64,000 bases of DNA, taken from assembly GCA_001179505.1 (NCBI GenBank), contig CDMY01000144.1, positions 117,451-181,450 on the forward strand. Reading direction: 5' to 3'. The position numbers and the translations under genes were made by a program. Shown piece by piece: positions 8,110-38,109 of the stretch; positions within the stretch are counted from its first letter, which is position 1; each line of letters starts with the position of its first letter. Below the pieces are notes generated by a model that saw only the letters and a program-made list of their open reading frames with translations, was not told the DNA's origin and searched no databases. This DNA comes from Vitrella brassicaformis CCMP3155 (Eukaryota > Protista > Chromerida).

Positions 8110-10611
8110 TTAACCGCAGCTCACCAAAGACGGAAGGCTGCAGTGGCGCAGTAGGAACAGCGCGATGAAGAGCGCCATCTGTGACGTGACCACCACAGCC
8201 GCTGCCAGCAGTGTCGTCAGTTCTGCCACCAAGTTGCATGAGGGCACAGCTCATAGAACGTCACCTTGCCGTATCGCTCATCGTGCAGTGCTCTTAGAAT
8301 GAAGAGAACAATGTAAGGTAGAAAGCCGCAGATTAGCGAGGCAGAGGCAAACAGGAGAGTCACCAGCCTGTATTTCACCACACCGGGCTCCGTCTCGCTC
8401 CTCAAGATCGGCAGATTGTGCAGCCGCACAGAAATCTGCAGACATGACACACACACACGCAGAGACCCATACAGACACGACATTGGAGCCGCTCCCTTTT
8501 GATGTGCCTGTCCACCATGAAAAGGACGACTTCGCAGGCCAACTCGATGGCGACCAGGAGACACAGCCCGCCCAGCCTCTCGAACAGCCGGGGCAGCGAG
8601 GGAGACAGCAGCTGCTCCATCGATATCAACGACAGATTGATGAAAACAAGGAAGAGGCTCTCGGCCTGATTGTAGGCATGAGTTTGGTCCGCCAACGCAC
8701 GAAGGTATCTCGGCTTGACGTCAAAGGCGATGAACTATATGGCACACACATTCACACACAAAGCAGACTCGTGCACATTGTATATCTGGCTCCATGTGTG
8801 GGCTGACATTGGATTGAAGATCGAGTGTCGACGTCATAGACGATAACCTGCTGGCTGACGACCGGGGCATTCGTCGGGCAGCCCTCATGACTCGTTGCTA
8901 GTACTGACTGGGCGACCGGCGCGGTGTCTCGGCTGAGCTCAATCGACTCATGGACTTGCGCGATTCCTCCCAGCTCACTGCTGCCGTGCTGAATGCGTCA
9001 CTGCTTGTTGATTTAGCCGCCACATAGGGACAGTCCGCAGCCTTGGAATCTTTGCATGTCTCAGCCTTTTCTGCCTCCGTGGTTGACCGGGCATCCCGAC
9101 TGATCATTCGGATGATGTTAGCGTGGAGAATGTCAGCATAGGGCACCGCCAGGTCGCCAAGGAGATCGTAGAGGGCGAACAACAAAGACGATATTATCTT
9201 GCTGCTAAGATTCTCCATCTTCGCCTGTTATAAGAAGGGCAGAGACATGAGTTACACACGGCTGTGTCTGCTGATGCATGGTGCGGGCATACATGCCTGG
9301 AGTAGCCGCGGCAGGAGTAGTGACCCGAAGCAGACGTAGAGCATAATAGCGTAGTTGCGCAGCGGCGGGCCGTCGCGCATCTTTCTGATTGTTCCACAGC
9401 CCACGGCCACCAAAGGCCAGATGATCAGCAGACACAAAGACGCCACTCGGGCCCTCTCGGTGTCTGTCGTGGCCGCCTCTGCCTGTTTTACAAAAAGTAG
9501 TCCCCACAACAAGACGGCGACGACCGAGAGCAGCAGGACGAAGAACATTTGCAGCGCATAGAGCCACCTATGTTTGACGCCCTCCATGCTTCCCGCAGCA
9601 CGTCCAAAGAACCAGCCCCACAGCAAAGATCCATAAGAGGTGTTCGATCGCAATGAGGACCCAGGTGTAACGCTGCCAGCCGACTGCGACTAGGCCCATG
9701 TACGAGAAGGAGACCGCCGAGGGCAAGAGGAACACAAGCCACGTCTGTCGAAGTCGTGCCCACATCCTACACAAGTGCATCCCCTCCACGATAAGTAGCA
9801 TCCACATAATAGCTGCCACGACCATCACAGAATTCCGCACGTAGTCCACCGCTATGCCGACTAGCGCACTCTCACTTTCGCAGCTTTTCCAGTATGCAAC
9901 TAGAATGCCGACCCACGGCAGTGCCATCATAATGGAAAAGAAGGCCTGGAAGAAGACCGCTGTGATAGCACGGCGCAGATATTGAGAGAAGGGCTCTGGC
10001 AAAAAGCGAGAGCCAGCCACGACCTCCCTCACGTAAACGGTGTCTCCGTCATTTGTCACAGTGGGTTCGTAAACCAAGTGCGAGGTGAATTCCTTCAAAG
10101 GCCGCCGGGTACCCTGCACATCGGTGCAGCCAAGCAGAGGACTCATAAGGTTTGTACTGTTACCAGATTAGTGCTGTGTGCCCTTGGCCCCTTCATTTGG
10201 CTCACCGGCAGCCTTCTCGAACTCCGTCTTCATGACCAAAATAGCCATCTCCTCAGCCCTCAGTGGCGGCCCCTCTTCAGTGATGTCCGGAAGAGTGGTC
10301 GAATGTGAGCACGTGGGGTGAGTCAGATGCGGCTTCGCCTGTTCCGCGCCTTGATGGTTGAAGTCGTCGCTCTTGCTGAGATGCGGAACTGCGGCCTGCT
10401 CGTCCTCTGTCCTGAGCTCTCCTGGCTGAACCCTCTGGCTGCATGGCGGGGGGGTGCAAATGTCTGGGTTGCTGAAGTGAATGAAGATCTCTGTGTCCCT
10501 TCTGAGAGCAGATCCATAGCTCCCCTCAGCTCTGTCGGATGGTTGTGGCTGCACATGGTCTTCTTGATCATCGCCGGGGCTGATCGCATCGCCGTACGGC
10601 CTGTTGATCAT
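8110..10611 (-). pseudogene. Multipass membrane protein of unknown family, with apparent frameshift and in-frame stop
   Basis: Successive hydrophobic exons (AITAVFFQAFFSIMMALPWVGILVAYW; WLYALQMFFVLLLSVVAVLLWGLLF; KMENLSSKIISSLLFALYDLLGDL; ESLFLVFINLSLISME; LVTLLFASASLICGFLPYIVLFILRAL). Frame switch near 9570-9610 and TAG at 8898-8900 followed by more open frame. Confidence 0.55.
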
Positions 10612-10666
10612 GTGTTCAAGCGGGTCGTGGTGAAATGGTGAAGCAAAGAGGCACTTTGGTGGAAGA

Positions 10667-10703
10667 ACGCTTGGATCGTCCCCCTATTTCAAGCTCGCAA
10701 AGA
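10667..10703 (+). promoter_or_regulatory. Shared upstream element, copy 2, in a divergent intergenic region
   Basis: ACGCTTGGATCGTCCCCCTATTTCAAGCTCGCAAAGA matches 6184-6226. Lies between ATG 10611 (-) and ATG 10942 (+). Confidence 0.45.
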
Positions 10704-27423: not shown

Positions 27424-29689
27424 TCACTGGCCCCTGTCCCTCCCTCCGCCAAGGAAGCCCCCACCTATTGTAGTAGCGTTGCTTTCCGTGGTCAGCTGCC
27501 TGTTTGATGATGATGATGATGCAACAGGGGGGTTGCAGACTGTGCGTACGGGGCATTGGATGGGCATCTGCAGCTGGCTGCCGTAGAACAGGGCGTTGAA
27601 TTCTATGCGGTAGTCGACGTCAAAATACAGCTGGGTCGTCACGGGGGAGGGATCCGCATCCGTGTCACACTGCAACACCTGCACGCATCAATCACACAGG
27701 CACTCATTGATGTGTGGCTTAATGCTCTGGTGGGTGGGCTCACTAGAGCTGGGGAGTCACCCAAGCCATGTGTTGCCTGCATGAGGAGGCCAACACCACA
27801 GGAAGACAGACATGACAGACAAACAGACAGACTGGCAGACAGCTGCACGAATGTCTCGTGTCCATCTGTGTCTCGCCCTCGCCCACCTTCAGGAAAAGTG
27901 ACCGGTCGTCGTTGATATGCAGGGGGAATTCTTCCGTACGTGGCTCGAGGCACCACGTATCGTTGCACATGTCGATGCCCGGGTCGAAGAAGCCGCAGAT
28001 GAGTGGATCTGGCTCTATATGTAGGAAGGCGCTGTATGGGGCGAAGGGCCGTCTCCGCTCCCCGCCTGCTGAGCCGTAGACGGTCAGATCAGCTGGGCAC
28101 TCCACACTGATGCGCGGCATAGGTCGGGGGTCTGGGTCTGACTGCAGGTCGCTCGGCAGTGGCGGGCTGCGCAGTGGCGGGCTGGGCGTAGAAGACGGCG
28201 GCGACTCGGTGGGCCAGTCGGCTTCACACACACATGCAGGCAGTGAGGTAGCCAGGCAGGTGATGGGTGTGTGATCAGATGGAGTAGGCCGATAGGTCAT
28301 TGATGAATACCTGTTTGGCAGTTGGTGATTAGTGTGCACACGATGTTGCCCGCGTATGGGTCGGTGCTTCCGTTGATGTTTGTCACCTCCGCGGTCAGAT
28401 AGAATCGGAAATTAGTCTCGACGAGGCCCAGCTTGTCAGCTTCACACGTGAGGGTCAAGTAGGACGGGGACACATCATCCGCCTTCATACACAGACAGAG
28501 AAATGCACACACACACACACATGAGCGACGCGGGGGTGGAATGGTTGTCGGACATCACATCACATCACATCACTTGCCTCGGTGAAGCTGAGTCGTCTGT
28601 CCATGCTGTCGACGTAGAAGATGAGCGGCTCCTTGCAGTCCGCGTCGCCGAGAGCGCAGAGCTTGAAGCCAGTGACCTTGACGTCCGTCACCGTCTCATC
28701 GACATGAACCCAGTCGGTGCCCGGGAACATGGGCTGGCTATTTGTGATGCTCTTTCCCGAGAGCAGCAGCGCCACTGTCTCGGGGCACTTGACGCTGAAA
28801 ACTGCACACACACAGCCCCACTCAAGGGAGTGCACTCCCCCTCTCTGGGTGCACGCGTGTGTCTGCCTACGATCATCGGACGGCCGCGATGTGTTGCCTA
28901 CACACATGCAGATACACGCACAGAGAGAAGGATTGGAGTAATTCTGTGAGCGTCGTTCGTCTGACCAACCTGTCTGCAGTTGGTCGCCCTCATCGACATT
29001 CGGATTATCAAGCACTCCAGCGGTGACAACCCTTGCACTGCCCTGCGGCATCATTCTGAAGTCGGCCAATCCCGTGGAGGGATCAACGGCATTGGTCCCG
29101 TGTACTTTCGGCCCGCCCTCGCCGCCATCCCGCTGCACAGTGAAGTTGGGGTACCTGGGCACCACGAACTCGACTGACAGGACTGGGACGTCGCCGCGAT
29201 GCACTTGAGCAGGGACGACCCCTGATTCCCTATTGAGAACGGGAAGGCGATATGAGTAGGTCCCATTGGGGTGGGGCACCACAGTATCCACAACCTCCAT
29301 AGACGTCTCTCGTATGATGTTGACGCTGTAGCTGTTGACAGCCGACTCACTCTCCTCCCACAACCCATTGGAGTTGCTGCACGAAAGAGAACGGAAGGAA
29401 GGAAGACAGCGGTACGAACTTTGAACACTCATGAGGTCTGCGTCTGTACGTGTCGAGAAAGACCGCGCCGACGATCCAAGCCTCTCCCTCTCTCGGAACG
29501 GCTGCAGCAGAGTCTAGTGGGCCGGACTCGAACAGCGGCTGCCCACCTGCAGAAACGGACAGATACAGAGAACCATCATGTTGATGTCCTTCACCTTTCG
29601 TCACCCTCAGTGAGAGTCCCACCGGCTTGTCGTACGTGTAGACAAACAAGAACTACGAGAAGTACTCGAAAGGAGAGGCGAGAGGCCAT
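27424..29689 (-). CDS. Secreted Cys-containing beta-sandwich (Ig/cadherin-like) repeat protein with Pro-rich linker
   Basis: Signal peptide MASRLSFRVLLVVLVCLHVRQAGG; beta-strand-rich exons (YSVNIIRETSMEVVDTVVP; YLTLTCEADKLGLVETNFRFYLTAEVTN; LQCDTDADPSPVTTQLYFDVDYRIEF); PPSSTPSPPLRSPPLP linker. Fold assignment is inference. Confidence 0.6.
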
Positions 29690-29736
29690 CTGCCACGAGT
29701 CGGCTGACCAACGGCACAGTGACTGTTGGTGTATTA

Positions 29737-29777
29737 TTTCAGTTTCGATCCGTCGGTATTGTTTCAGTTTCGATCCG
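29737..29777. repeat. Direct repeat TTTCAGTTTCGATCCG x2 (25-bp period) in the divergent promoter of the rhodopsin gene
   Basis: Read at 29737-29752 and 29762-29777. Confidence 0.85.
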
Positions 29778-29975
29778 CCACTCCCTTTTTTGAACGCCAT
29801 TCGTGCAAGCCCCCTTTCTCTCTGCTTCCCCCTCCTCACTGTTCCAACGAGAAAGGCCTTAGAAAATGGAGAAGAAGCACGAACAGCAGATCTCACAGCA
29901 GACCCCCATTCAGCAAACACAGAGGGCAAAAGGCGACCATTGCAAGAAGCGGGTGACATCTTGCGCAGAGATGAA

Positions 29976-32900
29976 ATGACGGACCCCATCCACACCTCAA
30001 GGCTCTTAAATTATTGGTCCTTTTTGGCTATCGGCGCTGCTCATCTCCTGTACCCCCTACTCATCTGGCTGTTGTGGAAGCTTCCCCTTGAGCAATACAC
30101 CGATTCGGACGTCTTTCCCGCCTACACTTCAACATTGCGCGCTGGAGTCAGTATTTGCTCAATCACAGGTCGGTCAATTGAGCACGAAGGATGTATGTCA
30201 TTGGGTTGTATTGCGTCTGCTCCTCTTATGAAGGTGCCGTGACGCTTCTTGCTGTTGCGTTCTCATCTGTTGCTGTGCTCGGCTTGCCGACAAGAGAGTC
30301 ACATCGTCAGGTCCAGCAGACTCCGGTCATCATCATTGTCGGCCTTATTGCCGCATACGCCTGTCGTCTCTCGGGTCTTGTCCCCGTCTTCCGAGAGCCG
30401 CTGTTTGGCCGGCCGGTTGATCCCACCAAGATCTTCGATTGGCTGTTGGACTGCCCACTCCTCTTTCTCCAGATTGGCGGGTGTCTCTTTGAGCTGCCTT
30501 TCTGGGAGGTGGCTCTTCCTGCATGTCTCACTGCGGCCTACTGTGCACTCGCGATCGGGGTGCAGTTCTCGCCGACTCTTCCCCTGCGCGTTGTTGGCCT
30601 GGCTGTCATTTCCGTCGCGGTAGTGGTTACAAACGTGTTGCAGCACCGATGGAACACCAAAAAACACCAGGCTCTACTCCAGAGGATCTCTCAAATGCGC
30701 AACGACCCCGTGACCAGCCCGTTCAGCGGTCTGCTCGAGGGTTCCATCAGCAAGGGAAGCGCGGAGACACACAGGCGACTGGCAGAGGACTCGACCGATG
30801 ACAGCGTAATGCAGTCGCTGAAGGTATGAAAGCTGCTTGTCTGTGCAGCGGGCTGGTACTAGTAATGGCTGCTTGCAGAATACAGGGGCGTGCAGAAAAG
30901 TGCAGCAGCTGCAGAACGAACTGAAAGAGGAGCACATCATGCGAGACTTTCATATCTTCTTTTGGCAAAGCTCAACCAATTGGACCTTCCTCATCAGCAA
31001 GCTTGTCTTCGGCCTGCCATTCTGTAGGAATGAGAGTGGGAAGTTGAGGGGTTTGTGTGTCCTTGTATGTGTCTGCTGTCAGTGCTGTCTATCTTCAATC
31101 GCCTTCCTCCACACTTGGAAATAGCCATCTACGCCTTCCTCGAGCTCGCCAGCAAGGCGTAAGGGAGCGCTGCTTGTATAGTGTCGATAGCTGTTTGTCA
31201 TGCTGGCAGCCAAGGTCTCGCTTCTCTCCCTTTGTAGGCTGCTTTCCATCTTTTCAATGAGTATCATACTTTTGGAAAAAGAGAGAGACATACACGAAAG
31301 GGTAATTATTCGAAGACACGAAAGAGCGAGGGAGCGGTATGACTTTCCATCCTTTGTACGCAGAAAATAATCCGCCTCCGAGTAATCCCAGGTCTGTCAT
31401 TCAAGGAAAGAGTTCTGGGGGGTGCAACTGAGTTGTTTTGCTTCCTCTCTCTCAGTTGAGCTTAAGAACGATACCCTCCACTGGATCATCCAGGCACTCA
31501 AACGGGCGGACGAATCGAAGAGGAGATTTATGCGCTACATCTTTCATGAGATTCGAGTGCCCATGCACAGCCTCACTGTTTGTATGGAGCTACTAGATGA
31601 GAAGCTCAACCACAAGGAGAAGCTGCTTCAAAACATGATTTGGTCAGCAGGAAATCGCAGGCGTGTCATTACATGGCGAGACTGTATTTTGATTGCTCAC
31701 ATTTGCGCAGGTCGGTTGAGCTGATGCGCGAGACGCTGAATGGTGAGACCAGCAAAAATTCACGGAAGTCACTTGCGACCCTCTGCCTGCTGCTGTATCG
31801 CTGTTTAGATGTGTTGCTCGTCCACCAAATGGAAGAGAGGGGGACGCTTCCCCTCACAAAAAGGTTCTTCCGACTTGATGACTTCCTCGCGCAAACAGTG
31901 GCGCGCTTCCAGGTATCGCACGCGAATGCAGTCAATCCCATAATGAATCGATGGAAGATTATGCTGTGCTCAGGGCGGTGCACGTCGAAAGAACCAGCGG
32001 CTGTCCATTGAAGGGTCTGTACCTGCTGTTCTTGTATATGCAGATGACCGCCGTTTAAGCCAAGCACTCGGTTGGCATATTCCCTGCATGCCTCCCTGCA
32101 AATGGTCTGAAGTGATGGCAGGTTTTCTTGTTAATTGTAGGCAATGGCATATCCAACAGCATCAAAGCCACTCCAACAGATGGCGAGATTATTGTCCGAG
32201 TGTCATCCACCGACTTCCCTCCTGGTGTCAGCAAGGCACGAGTGGAAAGAGATTACCCTGACCTAGCCTTGACGACCTTCACCTTTCAAGTATGAACGAG
32301 GACGAGACATGCAGAAGCTGCGCTGACGCCCCCTTTTCGTCCCGCAGATCACAGACAACGGTGTGGGCCTGTCAAAGGAGCAGCTGGATCGTCTGAATAG
32401 CTTCAACCCCTTCCAGACAGAAATGGACGCGAATGCCACTCTCGAGGAGGACAGCAGCGGCCTTGGCCTTGCCATTACCAACGAGGTGTGTCGGCGGCAT
32501 CATGGATCATGCCATCTTTCGTCGCCCGGGAAAGGCAAAGGCACGACGTTCACCATCGAGACTCCATTGGAGAGTATTTTGGCGAGCGATGTCGAGAGAC
32601 TCTCCGCCCGTCTGCGCAAGTCAATCGAGGACAACACCGCTCAAATGGTAAAACTTAGAGAGAGGACAGATATCAAAGCGGGCCAAAGCTATCAGGCAAG
32701 ACCGTCGACAGATATAAGTCCGGCGTCGAGGCTTCGATTCAGTCTCGTGGATGAAAACGAAGTGAGTCGACAAGGTCTCTCACTGAGAACGAGTGGGCAT
32801 CTTTTGTCCTCCCCTTCTTCCCCCGCTGTGTGTCTATGATCGTTGCAGGATTATGAATTCTTTATTGGCCACGGATCTGCCGCTGCCTCTCCCTGTTTAG

Positions 32901-35900
32901 CCAAGAGAAAAACGGGTCAAGGGACGGGAGCAAGGAACAGATCTCGTCCGCCAGCCAGCAGGCAGTCGGAATCGGGCGAGCAAATAGAGCCAATTTCCAT
33001 TGACAAATCGGCGACGGCTGTAGCGGCCAATTTGCCGCTGCAGAAAGATGCGAAGATCCGCTGTCTATGTGTTGACGACGGTAAACGACGGTTACACACT
33101 TTCAACGAGACTGAAGGACGTTTGCGCTTTTCCACGTTCAGACGAACACTGCCTTGAAGCGACGTGTGAGAAAGAGAGGGCTTGATGCCCATTGATAAAC
33201 GTCACCATGAATGCATGTCTCTGTATTCCTCCCTGACAGGTTTGCTGCTCAATTATGCTGTGCCGAGGATACAATTGACAGAGCCAACAATGGTCGCGAG
33301 GCGGTCGAGCTAGTGAAGCAAAAAGCATATGATGTCGTCTTGATGGACGTGTGCATGCCGATTATGAATGGGACTGGTAAAGAAGCACAAACGAGATACC
33401 CACCCGCATGAACACGTGGCTGAAAATGATGCAGAAGCGACCGAGAAGCTGAGGGCTCTTAGGTTTGCCGGCCGAGTAATCGGGCTTCCGGCTAACGTCA
33501 TCAGCGAGGACCGACAGAAGATGGTGCAGGCAGGTGCGAATGAGGTGATCGCAAAGGGGAGTCTCAGCAAAGAGTTTGTGCGCGAGAGATTCACGACATA
33601 CTTCCCGGATACACTCGCTACATGCCAGCGGGCACGCACAGGAAGCCTACTATCTACTCCAGCTCTACTGCCCACGCACACGGAAGAAGCGCCCCCAGAA
33701 GAAATATCCGCTCTGCCTCGTCTACCTGTGAAGAGGAGCACGAAGACGTCCTCCCAAATGCGACGACATGCATCGATAAAGACCGCCCTGCACCACACGG
33801 ACAGGAGGAGTCACCGAGAGGCACAGAGAGAAGAGGAGCAGACGGTGCTTGTTGTCGACGATGACGAGACATGCCGCCAAGCCACAAGTCTGTTGCTGCA
33901 GTACTGCGGTCGTCGCTACAGGTTGCATGTCATCGAGGCTGCAGACGGCTTGGAGGGGCTGGAGATCGTCAAGAAGTCCCCACAGAAGCCTGATCTTATC
34001 TTTATGGATCTCTTGATGCCTCGAATGGACGGGCTAGAAGCCACCAAGGCCATTAGGGAGTCTGGCCATGCGGGCGCCATTCTTGGCTTGAGCGCCAAGT
34101 GAGCGATAGACGTGCACAGACCTACACACATTGATTGTCTTGTCTATTATCTATGTGTTTGTCCCTTTGCATGCATCAGTTTGTTGGAGGAAGATGTCGA
34201 ACATCTGCTGAACGCTGGTGTTTCGGCCGTCATCGCCAAAGGCCAACGTACACTCACTCACACAACCAACACAGCCGGCTGCATACCCTTTCTTGACCGG
34301 TAATCTGTCTGTCTGTCTACTTCCCATTCAGTTACAAAACAAGTCATGACGGAGCTCCTGGACAAACATTTGAGTACCACCGCCGTACAGCCCTCTCAGC
34401 CGATGTCCAGCGAAAGCACGTCGCCAAGAACCAGCAAGGAGAAGGGCTCGCGTGCCTTGCTGCAAACGCTGCCGGAGACATCGGTTGACGAGGCTGCGTT
34501 GTCATGCACTACGTCGCGCAAGAAGCTTCTTCAGGCAGCCATGGTGTCCACCAACAAGGACGAACGAGGCTTTTCGCCCTCGTGCCCTCACTCCCCGCGA
34601 TCCAATATTGAGCACCTGGCCACGCAAGAAAGGAAGGAGACGGTCTCAAAAGAAGAGGCGGCCGTTTTGAGTGTTCAAGCCGATGCGTCGATCAGCTCCC
34701 AGGAAGCGAGTGACGAAACGTCGATACGCAGCCAGAAAGGAGCGATGCCAGATGAGGAAACCTTGGACGACATTCACCACCAAATGACAGAGACAGACGT
34801 CAATCGCGACGTGTTCTTCGACCTCAAGCCTGTTTTTGTCCAGAAGATCATAGAGAGCGTCCACGCTCACAATCTGCGGAGCATGAGCCACCTATGGTAG
34901 GGTGTTGCGCTACATGCTGTATGTTATTGTGCTGTCCTTCTTGTGCAGGTGCTCGTCCAAACAGGAGATGATTACAAAATGGTGCCGCAAATGTGGTACG
35001 ATGGCCGCCTCTTCAGCGACAGCCAAAGGCTGAACCCTTCAAGGACCTCTCCTGCAGACACCCTCAGTGATGGAGCTGTGTGGACACACCACAGGTTGGA
35101 GTTTCTGAAGCTCTCTTGATCAGCCTTTTTTTCGATTTCTGTTCATTGTGGTCACACAGGTTGTTGGAGAGTCTTTGCGCACGTTTCCGTGTTGTCAAGA
35201 CGCGTGACGTGACGGAGACGATGGAGCACCTTCTGACAAACTTCTTGCCCGATTTGCTGGTCATTCTTTGCACGGTGCAGCCTCGAGGGCTTCCCGTTGG
35301 CTATGAGGCTCTGGCGTATCAGGCTAGGGAATACGACGACACCATCAAGACAGTCACTAAGGTGAGAGTTGGTGCCCGTTGCTCATCCATTCAAGTCTGT
35401 GTGTATGCAGATTCGGAAGTTTCTCCCACTGGACTTCTTCAGTCTTGTCGTCATATCCTCTGTCAGCTTAGCGGACGATGGAGAGCCTGCAACCAACGAG
35501 AGCAGTGGCACTTCTCTTCGTGGGGGCAGCGGCAGGCTGAATCTCGGAAGGATCTTTCAGTGCGGCGTCTCTGCCCACACTGCCATCGGTTCCCTCCCAT
35601 ATGGAGAGCAGGACGACTATGTACGTATCACATAGCAGAACAGACGCGTCTCTCGCATTTATCTGCTTTGTTTGCACTCAGATGGTAGTGTATGAGCAGC
35701 TGATGAGCCTGGTGCATCAGCAGAGGGCTCGCAATCGTCGGCTGGTGGCTGCCAATGCGCAAACCCAGGAGGCGCAAAATCTGCTGGCGAAGATACTGCC
35801 AATGGACATCATTCAGAGAATGCACGACGGAGAGCAGCTCATTGCGGACGCTCATCCAAGTGTCACAATCTTCTTCAGTGACATAGTTGGGTTTACTTCG

Positions 35901-38109
35901 ATTACAAGCCAGGCAAGACGGGCACAGAGCCACTAGATGCGGCACGAGCAAGGCGAGGATAATAACCTACGTGGACCAATGCCATCAGGTCCCAACAGCC
36001 TCGATGGTGTTGTTTCTCAACAAGGTACGAAGCCGTCCTCATTGATCATCTTCCTCTCCTTTGCTGGTTGCCTCTCCCCGCGTTTACACGTGCAGCTCTT
36101 TGGCAAGATGGACTCGCTCTCGGACAAATATGGCTGCTACAAGGTCGAAACGATAGGAGACGCCTACATGTGCGCCAGCGGACACGACGGGAAGGCTGAT
36201 CACGTCATATGCATGCTGAAGTTTGCAATCGCTGTGCAGCAGGAGGCTTCCAAGTGAGCAATCTCTGGCGCGGACCAGTGTACGAGACGAGGTGTCTTTG
36301 GACATGCTTGCTTTGCTGCTGTCGTGTCAGGATGAAACTTCCAAACGGAGAGCCTCTGAGGTTCTCCATTCCGAAGAGGGCTCATTCACACCGCCAAACT
36401 CTTCCAACTTTCGTGTCAGGATGCGAGTGGGGCTTCATACGGGCCCGGCTTTCACGGGTGTCGTCGGGCGCAAGTGTCCTCGCTTCTGTTTCTTTGGCGA
36501 CACCGTGAACACGGCAGCGCGGATGGAGCAGACGGGGATGCCACAAGTGAGAGCCGAAGGTTCATCAAGTGGATGGGGAGAGGTCACTTCTCATCTCGTC
36601 GTGTTATCTTTGTGCAGTGTATCCATATCAGCGCTCGCCTTCGTAACGGTCTAAGAGACATACATGACAAGCGCCCACAGACCGTGAAGGCAGCGCCACC
36701 CGACAAGACGCGTCAGAGAAGAGCGAGCGTCGACAGCGACAATCCTTCAGACGGATCCTTGCAAGTGACGTCGCCGGCAGCCAACAGGTCGTCACCAGGT
36801 GAAGACGCTATGCAGAGTGAGACACTGCACTAATTCAGCGCGGGAGGATCAGAGTCAAGGGGAAACCAGCAATGTGGACATACTTTGTCAATTATAAGGG
36901 CTGTCCGCAGAATCTGGCCGAGATGTGCAGAGAAGCTCGTGATGGAGGGGATCTCCACACGCCAACTTTCTATGGAACGCCGACACCAGAAAAGAGTGAT
37001 CGCGCGGTAAGCGGGATAGTCACACTGATGTACAGAGACATGCAACTAAGGCTCACTGCCTGCCTCACTTGTGTATGCATGGCTATCAATCCTAAGCCCT
37101 CACCCATCCCATCCCTGATCCTTGAGGGCCCGCGGACCAAGTCGATGGCTGAGCCCTGTGTCAACGTGCTTCCACCGGCATCCAGCCCCCCAGTGATCCC
37201 CCAGCCCAGCCCAGCGCCAACAACCGCGGAGGGAAATGCTCCTATTGCACTGGACAAAACAAAGTCCCTCGACATCCCTCAGGACGTCCTTTTGGAGAGG
37301 AGGGCTCAACCCCCCGCTGAGGCGGGGTCCCGAGAAGAGCAAGATGACAAAGACAAGACTCGGGAGACGCTTGATGAGAGGCACGCAGCCGACCTGCCAG
37401 CGGAAGACAAGCCGGAGACCGACAAGGCGCTTGACGGCTTGGCAGCTTCCTTTTCCAGACCACCCCTCTCCAGCGCAGCGTCCTCCTCAGACCAGCTCTC
37501 CCGAGAGCGAACAGGATCGATACTCAACTACAGCGAGCGCGCAGTGCTTCATCAGTCCTTCATATCAGCCTCTACCAGCAGCACTCTCCACCTGGCGCAA
37601 CCTGGGAAGCGACACCCTCCATTTGGCATCTCGCGTCTGCTGCATCTGTTTGGGGGAGACGAGAAGGGTGGCAACAGCGTCTTCTGTGGGCTTGCTGAGG
37701 GGGAGCTTCTACGGGTGTTGAAGGGGCTGTCGGATGAGACACTGTTGAAAGGGGTTGTCCTTCTGGCCAAGGCGCAGCAGCAGGCAGATGCGCTTATGAT
37801 CGAGCAACTCTCGCAAAAGGTGAGCAAGGGCGAACACATGCAAAGAGAAGGAGACATGATTTGCCGCATCTTTGTGTCTCCATGCAGCTCAAGGCAGCTC
37901 ACGACCGCGTCGATGCGCTGGAGGCGAGCGACATTGACCTCCGCCGGACCATCGCCTCGCTTCAGATCCTCACTCAGCTATGCCGCGCTCAGCTGCAGGC
38001 CGCTGCATTAGCTTCGTCGGCGAGTGGTGTCTCCTCTTCTGAGGACCAGGACGAGGCAGCCAAGGGCGGCTTCAATGAGCTGGAGCACCCCACATGGCTC
38101 ACTTTCTGA
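29976..38109 (+). CDS. Histidine kinase rhodopsin-guanylyl cyclase (2c-Cyclop-like enzymerhodopsin): TM0 + 7TM rhodopsin - HisKA - HATPase - REC - REC - pseudo-REC - GC - coiled tail
   Basis: Helix [24 protein letters not shown]; helix [22 protein letters not shown]; H-box [13 protein letters not shown]; N/G1/G2 boxes NSIK, ITDNGVG, SGLGLAI; receivers [14 protein letters not shown] and [14 protein letters not shown]; cyclase [53 protein letters not shown]. Confidence 0.9.
30003..31262 (+). other. Type-1 (microbial) rhodopsin domain with extra N-terminal TM0
   Basis: Spliced exons give 8 hydrophobic segments. Helix C aligns to bacteriorhodopsin RYADWLFTTPLLLLD; helix G aligns to VPLNIETLLFMVLDVSAKVGF. 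Schiff-base Lys codon AAG at 31154-31156. Confidence 0.85.
31457..32575 (+). other. Histidine kinase core (HisKA + HATPase_c)
   Basis: Phospho-His codon CAT at 31545-31547 in FHEIRVP; N box [10 protein letters not shown]; G1 DNGVG; G2 SGLGLAIT; terminal [11 protein letters not shown]. Confidence 0.92.
33050..35360 (+). other. Receiver array: REC1, REC2 and a degenerate third receiver-like segment
   Basis: REC1: CVDD / MDVCMP / IGLPAN / VIAKG. REC2: VVDD / MDLLMP / LGLSAN / VIAKG. Third: [30 protein letters not shown], with no phospho-Asp. Confidence 0.8.
35780..36895 (+). other. Class III nucleotide cyclase with guanylyl-cyclase specificity residues
   Basis: Both metal-binding Asp present (FSDIV, IGDAY); Glu in KVETIG and Cys in RFCFFG (GTP-selecting); catalytic N and R in NTAAR. 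Confidence 0.92.

Follow-up and report, generated by a model that had tools for sequence, protein, structure and literature searches.

The gene considered here lies on the forward strand of a 64,000-nucleotide (nt) stretch of the Vitrella brassicaformis CCMP3155 genome (GenBank assembly GCA_001179505.1, contig CDMY01000144.1, positions 117,451 to 181,450; hereafter the window, from whose first letter all coordinates are counted). The question it raises is whether the histidine kinase it encodes is governed by a rhodopsin whose retinal pocket, with three carboxylates at counterion positions, makes it a sensor of red or far-red light, as an earlier note on this DNA had proposed. The best explanation, which as a whole we hold to be probable, is that an expressed microbial rhodopsin with eight transmembrane (TM) helices serves as the N-terminal sensor of a chain that continues through a kinase and two receivers to a guanylyl cyclase, and that this sensor is related to the bestrhodopsins and has an unusual Schiff-base environment. 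The colour to which it is sensitive is not derivable from sequence.

The codons between 30428 and 31156 on which the proposal was founded sit, when the three frames are read together with their GT..AG sites, in a multi-exon gene on the plus strand, with TM3 and TM7 encoded by separate exons. Public RNA runs were aligned to window 29300-32800. In run X6, a spliced contig of 4,736 nt, with its 5' end at 29799, contains all of the predicted joints (30168/30234, 30823/30879, 31023/31083, 31158/31238, 31300/31363, 31388/31453 and six more, all GT..AG), and run X1, from a different study, provides contigs over exon 1, one of them stopping at the donor site. None of the RNA runs aligned showed any base difference from the window. 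Because these contigs carry the predicted joints, transcription and splicing of the N-terminal exons follow the model. Read from its first in-frame ATG, at 29976, the transcript encodes a full protein of about 1,991 residues; the public product, CEL93190.1 (A0A0G4EB57), has 1,773 residues, is named only "histidine kinase", and begins at Met219 of the RNA-supported model, inside exon 2, omitting the 218 residues that make up TM0 to TM5 (window 29976-30694).

Hydropathy indicates eight membrane helices in the rhodopsin, and the annotated part of the protein matches the Pfam families HisKA (E 8e-7), HATPase_c (2e-18), Response_reg (two copies, 3e-36) and Guanylate_cyc (8e-49). Read from the protein sequence, the N, G1 and G2 boxes of the kinase, the H-box histidine and the aspartates of both receivers are intact. 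The specificity residues of the cyclase are the Glu in KVETIGD and the Cys in PRFCFFGD, a pair that we take, applying general knowledge of class III enzymes by eye, to mark guanylyl rather than adenylyl cyclases. The predicted product is a single chain of 8-TM rhodopsin, HisKA/HATPase, two receivers and guanylyl-type cyclase, and this order, drawn from Pfam and the RNA-supported N-terminal exons, is that of a histidine kinase rhodopsin (HKR) or 2c-Cyclop.

The assignments made earlier against bacteriorhodopsin (BR), namely R82 to Lys, T89 to Asp, T90 to Cys, D96 to Gln and D212 to Glu, with D85 and K216 kept, agree exactly with the codons, and the introns between them are confirmed by RNA. In TM3 the segment K130-I-F-D133-W134-L-L-D137-C-P139 has the expected basic residue, the carboxylate three residues beyond it followed at once by Trp (W134, TGG, the W86 position), and a Pro at 3.51 (P139, CCA, the P91 position). 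W134, P139 and a gap-free alignment to both rhodopsin domains of the solved bestrhodopsin of Phaeocystis antarctica (RRB, Protein Data Bank [PDB] entry 7PL9) fix the register of this helix. In TM7, where E330-x-x-x-K334 places the lysine four residues past the counterion and position 7.49 is Ser (S333), the register is fixed by features common to 7PL9, a Chromera homologue and dinoflagellate relatives: a Glu twelve residues before the lysine (E322), an aromatic residue eight before, a carboxylate four before, and the lysine itself. Since the D96 position is occupied by Q144, there is no proton donor.

The three carboxylates D133, D137 and E330 do stand, as had been claimed, at the positions that define the counterion triad of NeoR (E136/D140/E262) and of bestrhodopsins, which likewise keep three carboxylates, their primary pair being Glu/Asp (PMC12875766). 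The set is Asp/Asp/Glu at 3.45/3.49/7.46, a third combination beside the Glu/Asp/Glu of NeoR and the Glu/Asp/Asp of bestrhodopsin. The accompanying statement about known rhodopsins is right for bestrhodopsin as to the Asp at the T89 position, but not as to a Glu at the D212 position, where 7PL9 has Asp in both domains. Glu at 7.46 and a residue other than Arg at 3.42 are each rare (PMC13739731), and in a family table of 26 sequences only Vitrella has Lys at 3.42, Asp at 3.49 and Glu at 7.46; at 3.42, 3.45, 3.49 and 7.46 the Chromera homologue reads R/D/H/D, against K/D/D/E in Vitrella, and dinoflagellates read F/E/N followed by N or D.

The likeness to bestrhodopsin, also suggested earlier, is borne out by searches with the rhodopsin domain, in which 7PL9 was the top solved match every time Vitrella TM1-TM5 was included. 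Exon 2 alone matched it with an E-value of 0.005 and matched no other rhodopsin in the PDB; a two-chromerid profile of TM1-TM5 gave 3.4e-6 (next rhodopsin 0.07); a profile of the chromerids with relatives from the European Nucleotide Archive (ENA) gave 7e-12 (next match 5e-4); and a profile of the chromerids with ten dinoflagellate sequences, from alignment A6, gave 2e-15 (next match 8e-11) and matched more than 100 solved rhodopsins. Bestrhodopsin carries the motifs R-Y-M-E-W-T-I-D-A-C in TM3, W-W-V-L-Y-G-V-L-F in TM6 and E-Q-L-L-W-T-G-M-D-V-V-M-K in TM7. Vitrella and 7PL9 have in common the B-C loop motif PVF-x-EP-x-x-GR-x-V, Asp at 3.49, an aromatic-Gly pair in TM6, and the Glu, aromatic residue, carboxylate and Lys of TM7. 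Judged from these alignments, the relationship is a real one and extends beyond the triad.

Run exhaustively against 1.84 billion representative sequences, an HMMER search with exon 2 matched only three proteins, one of them the public product of this gene, and no HKR was among these matches. The last homologue search returned 24 relatives, mainly from Symbiodiniaceae and Polarella, whereas the annotated, truncated protein had found only bacterial hybrid kinases, and a search led by the full-length Chromera protein returned only that protein. Since bestrhodopsins are known from haptophytes and dinoflagellates (PMC10962995), an alveolate relative is plausible. As part of the explanation favoured above, the sensor is probably a member of a small clade in alveolates, for which the rhodopsin domain of bestrhodopsin is the nearest relative of solved structure, and the pocket of the sensor would not be of the green-algal type. 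One dinoflagellate-type relative (ENA ERZ25070293, ctg3046l, 10001-10690) lies on a 2-Mb contig amid many telomere-like repeats of CCCTAAA type, and tblastn found no exons past TM5 for it. Two other relatives may be either rhodopsin-dehydrogenase fusions or merged gene models: for product P0126 of Symbiodinium sp. CCMP2456, precomputed Pfam results list Bac_rhodopsin and adh_short (short-chain dehydrogenase), and for product P0136 (Skav214240) they list dehydrogenase domains only, its rhodopsin part being known from a profile match and the family alignment.

The TM6 register is where our reading departs from the earlier one, in which W290 held the W182 position. The Vitrella segment L-V-F-G-L-P-F aligns gap-free to V-Y-G-x-V-Y of the family and to L-Y-G-V-L-F of bestrhodopsin, and the distance from the glycine at 6.54 to the retinal lysine is 28 residues in Vitrella (G306-K334) and in dinoflagellates, against 30 in 7PL9. 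This family-anchored alignment places K302 at W182 (6.50), an assignment we consider probable. The candidate W290 was rejected, as it would lie 44 residues before the retinal lysine, while the Trp-to-Lys distance is 34 in BR and 7PL9 and 32 in the family. A MAFFT alignment (A5) that misplaced the TM6-TM7 piece onto TM3 was discarded. In BR structures, T89 and W182 flank the Schiff-base end of the retinal on its cytoplasmic side. Because D137 and K302 occupy these positions, and because each is found only in Vitrella among the 26 sequences, an ion pair between them is conceivable, as opposed to a "third counterion". Retinal binding can survive the loss of W182: a NeoR-like protein devoid of W86, W182 and Y185 still gives a 630-nm pigment (PMC10622942). 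Between TM5 and TM6, the cytoplasmic E-F loop of about 80 residues (window 30653-30947) is rich in charged residues, has predicted helices, and is not found in the Chromera, dinoflagellate or bestrhodopsin relatives.

Table 1. Exons, pocket residues and other features of the Vitrella rhodopsin gene, in window coordinates; residues are given with their bacteriorhodopsin and generic positions.
Feature	Coordinates	Strand	Basis
Upstream open reading frame (ORF), 37 codons, 5' leader, overlaps main start codon	29866..29979	+	inside spliced RNA contig
Exon 1: start codon, TM0 (residues 13-34), beginning of TM1	29976..30168	+	joint 30168/30234, GT..AG; not in public gene model
Exon 2: TM1-TM5 and first part of long cytoplasmic E-F loop	30234..30823	+	spliced RNA; best PDB match 7PL9
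Exon 3: end of E-F loop, most of TM6	30879..31023	+	spliced RNA; agrees with annotated protein
Exon 4: end of TM6, F-G loop, TM7 to Schiff-base lysine	31083..31158	+	spliced RNA; annotated protein
Exon 5: cytoplasmic half of TM7, beginning of kinase linker	31238..31300	+	spliced RNA; annotated protein
Other exons: HisKA, HATPase_c, two receivers, class III cyclase, C-terminal tail	31363..38109	+	Pfam; RNA joints
K130 (AAG), R82 / 3.42	30428..30430	+	aligned to Arg in 7PL9 and Chromera
D133 (GAT), first counterion, D85 / 3.45	30437..30439	+	codon reading; 7PL9 alignment
D137 (GAC), extra carboxylate, T89 / 3.49	30449..30451	+	gap-free to Asp of both 7PL9 domains
C138 (TGC), T90 / 3.50	30452..30454	+	codon reading
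Q144 (CAG), D96 / 3.56	30470..30472	+	codon reading
K302, probably W182 / 6.50 (gap-free family alignment)	30999..31001	+	two MAFFT alignments and hidden Markov model (HMM) alignment
F305-G306, Y185-P186 / 6.53-6.54; parallels bestrhodopsin Tyr-Gly	31008..31013	+	family alignment
E322, E204 / 7.38, TM7 register anchor	31118..31120	+	family alignment
E330 (GAG), second counterion, D212 / 7.46	31142..31144	+	four residues before K334
K334 (AAG), predicted retinal Schiff-base lysine, K216 / 7.50	31154..31156	+	near-invariant column in alignment A6
H396, HisKA H-box phospho-acceptor His	31545..31547	+	Pfam and codon reading

The upstream ORF at 29866-29979 ends within the region of the main start codon, and translational control by it is possible. 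On the minus strand, a spliced X6 contig within 29300-29720, with CT..AC joints at 29376/29450 and 29541/29618, marks an upstream neighbour. As this contig stops about 80 bases before the rhodopsin-kinase transcript begins, the two form a divergent gene pair with a short shared intergenic region.

Among characterised systems, bestrhodopsin, whose far-red dark state (about 660 nm) photoswitches to about 540 nm, resembles the Vitrella sensor in its eight helices including TM0, the B-C loop motif, Trp at 3.46, Asp at 3.49, the aromatic-Gly pair at 6.53-6.54 and the TM7 anchors. It differs in that the Vitrella protein has no bestrophin domain, its output being a kinase relay to a cyclase; in the primary pair, Asp/Glu in Vitrella and Glu/Asp in bestrhodopsin, so that the full bestrhodopsin set of Glu 3.45, Asp 3.49 and Asp 7.46 is absent; at 3.42 (Lys in Vitrella, Arg in 7PL9), 3.51 (Pro, against Cys or Thr), 6.50 (probably Lys, against Trp) and 7.49 (Ser, against Met); and in the long E-F loop, with identity of only about 25-30% over TM2-TM4. 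NeoR (Rhizoclosmatium globosum RGC3) likewise has carboxylates at 3.45, 3.49 and 7.46, with Glu at 7.46, and is an enzyme rhodopsin ending in a guanylyl cyclase, but its residue at 3.45 is Glu where Vitrella has Asp, so Vitrella lacks the combination of Glu 3.45 with Glu 7.46. NeoR is moreover fungal, with a directly fused cyclase and a heterodimer partner, whereas Vitrella has a kinase and two receivers in between, and no specific sequence relationship between Vitrella and NeoR was detected in the searches made. The sodium pumps of the NDQ type (KR2) also have Asp 3.49 next to the Schiff base and Asp 7.46, but they have Asn at 3.45 and are bacterial, green-absorbing ion pumps of seven helices; because KR2 carries Asp 3.49 and is nevertheless green, that residue alone gives no red shift.

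In domain order the closest systems are the green-algal 2c-Cyclops and HKRs (Cr2c-Cyclop1, Vc2c-Cyclop1, HKR1), in which an 8-TM rhodopsin is followed by HisKA/HATPase, receiver and guanylyl cyclase; 2c-Cyclops are ATP-dependent, light-inhibited guanylyl cyclases with eight TM helices (PMC6284317). The phosphorelay logic would be the same in Vitrella, which differs in its two receivers, alveolate host, bestrhodopsin-like motifs and three-carboxylate pocket; HKR2 is without carboxylates at the counterion positions (PMC8815786). The only clear homologue over the whole rhodopsin domain is Cvel_6411 (A0A0G4HD49) of Chromera velia, with 28% identity over 290 columns and the same TM3, TM6 and TM7 registers. 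It too has an H-box-like segment after the rhodopsin, but there the H-box His is exchanged for Asp, and it shows no Pfam kinase, receiver or cyclase match at E <= 0.01. It looks, from these features, like a degenerate or repurposed copy.

Several observations weigh against the rhodopsin reading or against giving its triad a function. Exon 2 alone scores 15 bits against Pfam Bac_rhodopsin, whose gathering score is 24.6, although the Chromera homologue passes that threshold (28 bits) and, searched alone, gives a weak match to Rh-PDE. The structural evidence consists of partial or proxy models of low confidence: the model of the exon 2 piece, with a predicted local distance difference test (pLDDT) score of 65, had no significant Foldseek match, and that of the Chromera proxy, with a pLDDT of 54, speaks for the rhodopsin reading in showing eight helices and a B-C hairpin, its top Foldseek matches all being microbial rhodopsins, Rh-PDE first, at TM-scores of 0.35-0.5. 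The TM6-TM7 part has an HMM domain score of -3 by itself and, as a single sequence or a two-sequence profile, no significant match among solved rhodopsins in the PDB, so that the identification of K334 as the retinal lysine depends on colinearity and the anchors described above. The W182 position is probably Lys, the E-F loop carries its insertion of about 80 residues, and the Asp/Asp/Glu triad occurs in 0 of 25 relatives, the Chromera homologue included, which may mean a neutral, lineage-specific change.

One rival account is a degenerate sensor that has lost retinal binding, leaving the kinase-cyclase constitutive or otherwise regulated. The very divergent TM6-TM7, the altered W182 and Y185-P186 positions, the long E-F insertion, and the degenerate look of the Chromera homologue (H-box Asp; none of the enzymatic domains matched) fit this account, but the reading frame is intact and expressed, the catalytic motifs of kinase, receivers and cyclase are all intact, and K334, W134, P139, both counterion positions, E322 and the TM6 aromatic-Gly pair are retained. 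The NeoR-like protein mentioned above forms its pigment without W86, W182 and Y185 (PMC10622942), and retinal is available in Vitrella, which has working rhodopsins (PMC10147648). We regard a degenerate sensor as very unlikely, and absence of a pigment for any reason as only marginally less so.

If a pigment forms, the three carboxylates may make up a complex of NeoR/bestrhodopsin type with one shared negative charge, which would absorb in the red or far-red (>= about 620 nm) and would be the first far-red, kinase-coupled rhodopsin to control cyclic guanosine monophosphate (cGMP). Mutants of R82 in BR lead one to expect that Lys in place of Arg at 3.42 should raise the carboxylate pKa. Besides the occupancy of 3.45, 3.49 and 7.46, this account has in its favour Glu 7.46, otherwise a hallmark of NeoR (PMC12875766, PMC13739731), the Asp 3.49 in common with 7PL9, a closest solved relative that absorbs at about 660 nm in a far-red state requiring a protonated counterion, and at 560 nm at high pH (PMC10962995), and the bestrhodopsin-like Gly at 6.54, which at the G/P switch is the variant that moves absorption to the red (PMC13739731), Gly or Thr there red-shifting several rhodopsins (PMC8815786). 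D140T, moreover, blue-shifts NeoR by 60 nm (PMC7655827). However, the first counterion is Asp, and NeoR E136D and E262D bind no retinal (PMC7655827); bestrhodopsins with variation at the first counterion absorb in the green, at about 530 nm, and are bistable (PMC10622942); and near-infrared absorption does not require the carboxylate at 3.49, since ClNeoR1 with Ser 3.49 absorbs at 695 nm and RgNeoR D140S/A remains near-infrared, findings that challenge the triad concept (PMC10622942). Sodium pumps with Asp 3.49 and Asp 7.46 are green (PMC8815786), Ser 7.49 is, at the A/TS switch, the variant that moves absorption to the blue (PMC13739731), the probable Lys 6.50 would set a positive charge beside the polyene, and no relative keeps the triad. 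The suggestion of a red or far-red absorber thus retains the triad and the bestrhodopsin kinship on its side, and loses ground on the Asp/Asp/Glu set, its absence from relatives, Ser 7.49 and the probable Lys 6.50; we judge it unlikely. In the alternative of an ordinary visible sensor, D137 would be neutralised, whether by being protonated with a hydrogen bond to D133 or by pairing with K302 across the retinal, and D133 and E330 would act as a normal two-carboxylate counterion, giving an HKR-like pigment in the blue-to-orange range, possibly with an ultraviolet-absorbing, deprotonated partner state. The Vitrella-only D137 and K302, at the T89 and W182 positions, suit this account, as do the blue-to-green absorption of characterised enzyme rhodopsins (PMC8815786, PMC12558739) and the state of D140 in NeoR, which is protonated and mainly excludes water (PMC12875766, PMC10622942). 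Against it, the register placing K302 at 6.50 comes from a weak alignment, and kinship to a family absorbing at 660 nm is compatible with a red shift. We put this particular arrangement at somewhat under an even chance. For the absorption maximum itself, a visible value from blue to orange seems slightly more likely than not, and one at or above 600-620 nm is doubtful.

The earlier note also regarded bistability as unusual in a rhodopsin coupled to a kinase. This is contradicted by HKR1, the classic example of bistability among microbial rhodopsins (PMC8815786), and bistable or photochromic behaviour is common to HKR1, NeoR and bestrhodopsin (PMC8815786, PMC12291454); the novelty would lie in far-red absorption alone. 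In the mechanism we propose for the bestrhodopsin-related sensor, retinal bound to K334 would isomerise and change proton sharing in the cluster of D133, D137 and E330, resulting in a long-lived, probably photochromic, signalling state. TM7 would pass the change through a linker of about 50 residues to H396 in the H-box, and phosphotransfer to the receivers would set the output of the cyclase, in whichever direction it is regulated, and hence cGMP. The unusual pocket, with Asp 3.45, Asp 3.49, Glu 7.46, Lys 3.42 and probably Lys 6.50, would have been acquired in Vitrella.

What is new here, as predicted from the sequence, is an enzyme rhodopsin of 2c-Cyclop type with a bestrhodopsin-related sensor and an Asp/Asp/Glu pocket, concealed by a truncated gene model. 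With the first six membrane helices absent from the public record, the gene was filed only as a histidine kinase and missed by rhodopsin surveys, and correction of the model is worthwhile even if the pigment is green. NeoR apart, every characterised enzyme rhodopsin is sensitive to blue or green light, and the cited reviews describe no red-sensitive kinase rhodopsin (PMC8815786, PMC12558739). A bolder reading would make the protein the first red- or far-red-absorbing, photochromic pigment among kinase-coupled enzyme rhodopsins, its Asp/Asp/Glu cluster possibly tuned by a pair of Asp 3.49 and Lys 6.50. We hold this unlikely, and somewhat less probable than far-red absorption as such; if true, a chromerid alga would set its cGMP by red versus green or ultraviolet light, in the manner of a phytochrome, and a red-light-switchable cyclase would become available for optogenetics. 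Compared with bestrhodopsin, the Asp and Glu of TM3 and TM7 have changed places, and the protein thereby offers a natural test of how the counterion triad functions. The presence of a bestrhodopsin-related module on one chain with a His-Asp relay and with a guanylyl cyclase shows that this type of sensor has been joined to more than one output in alveolates.

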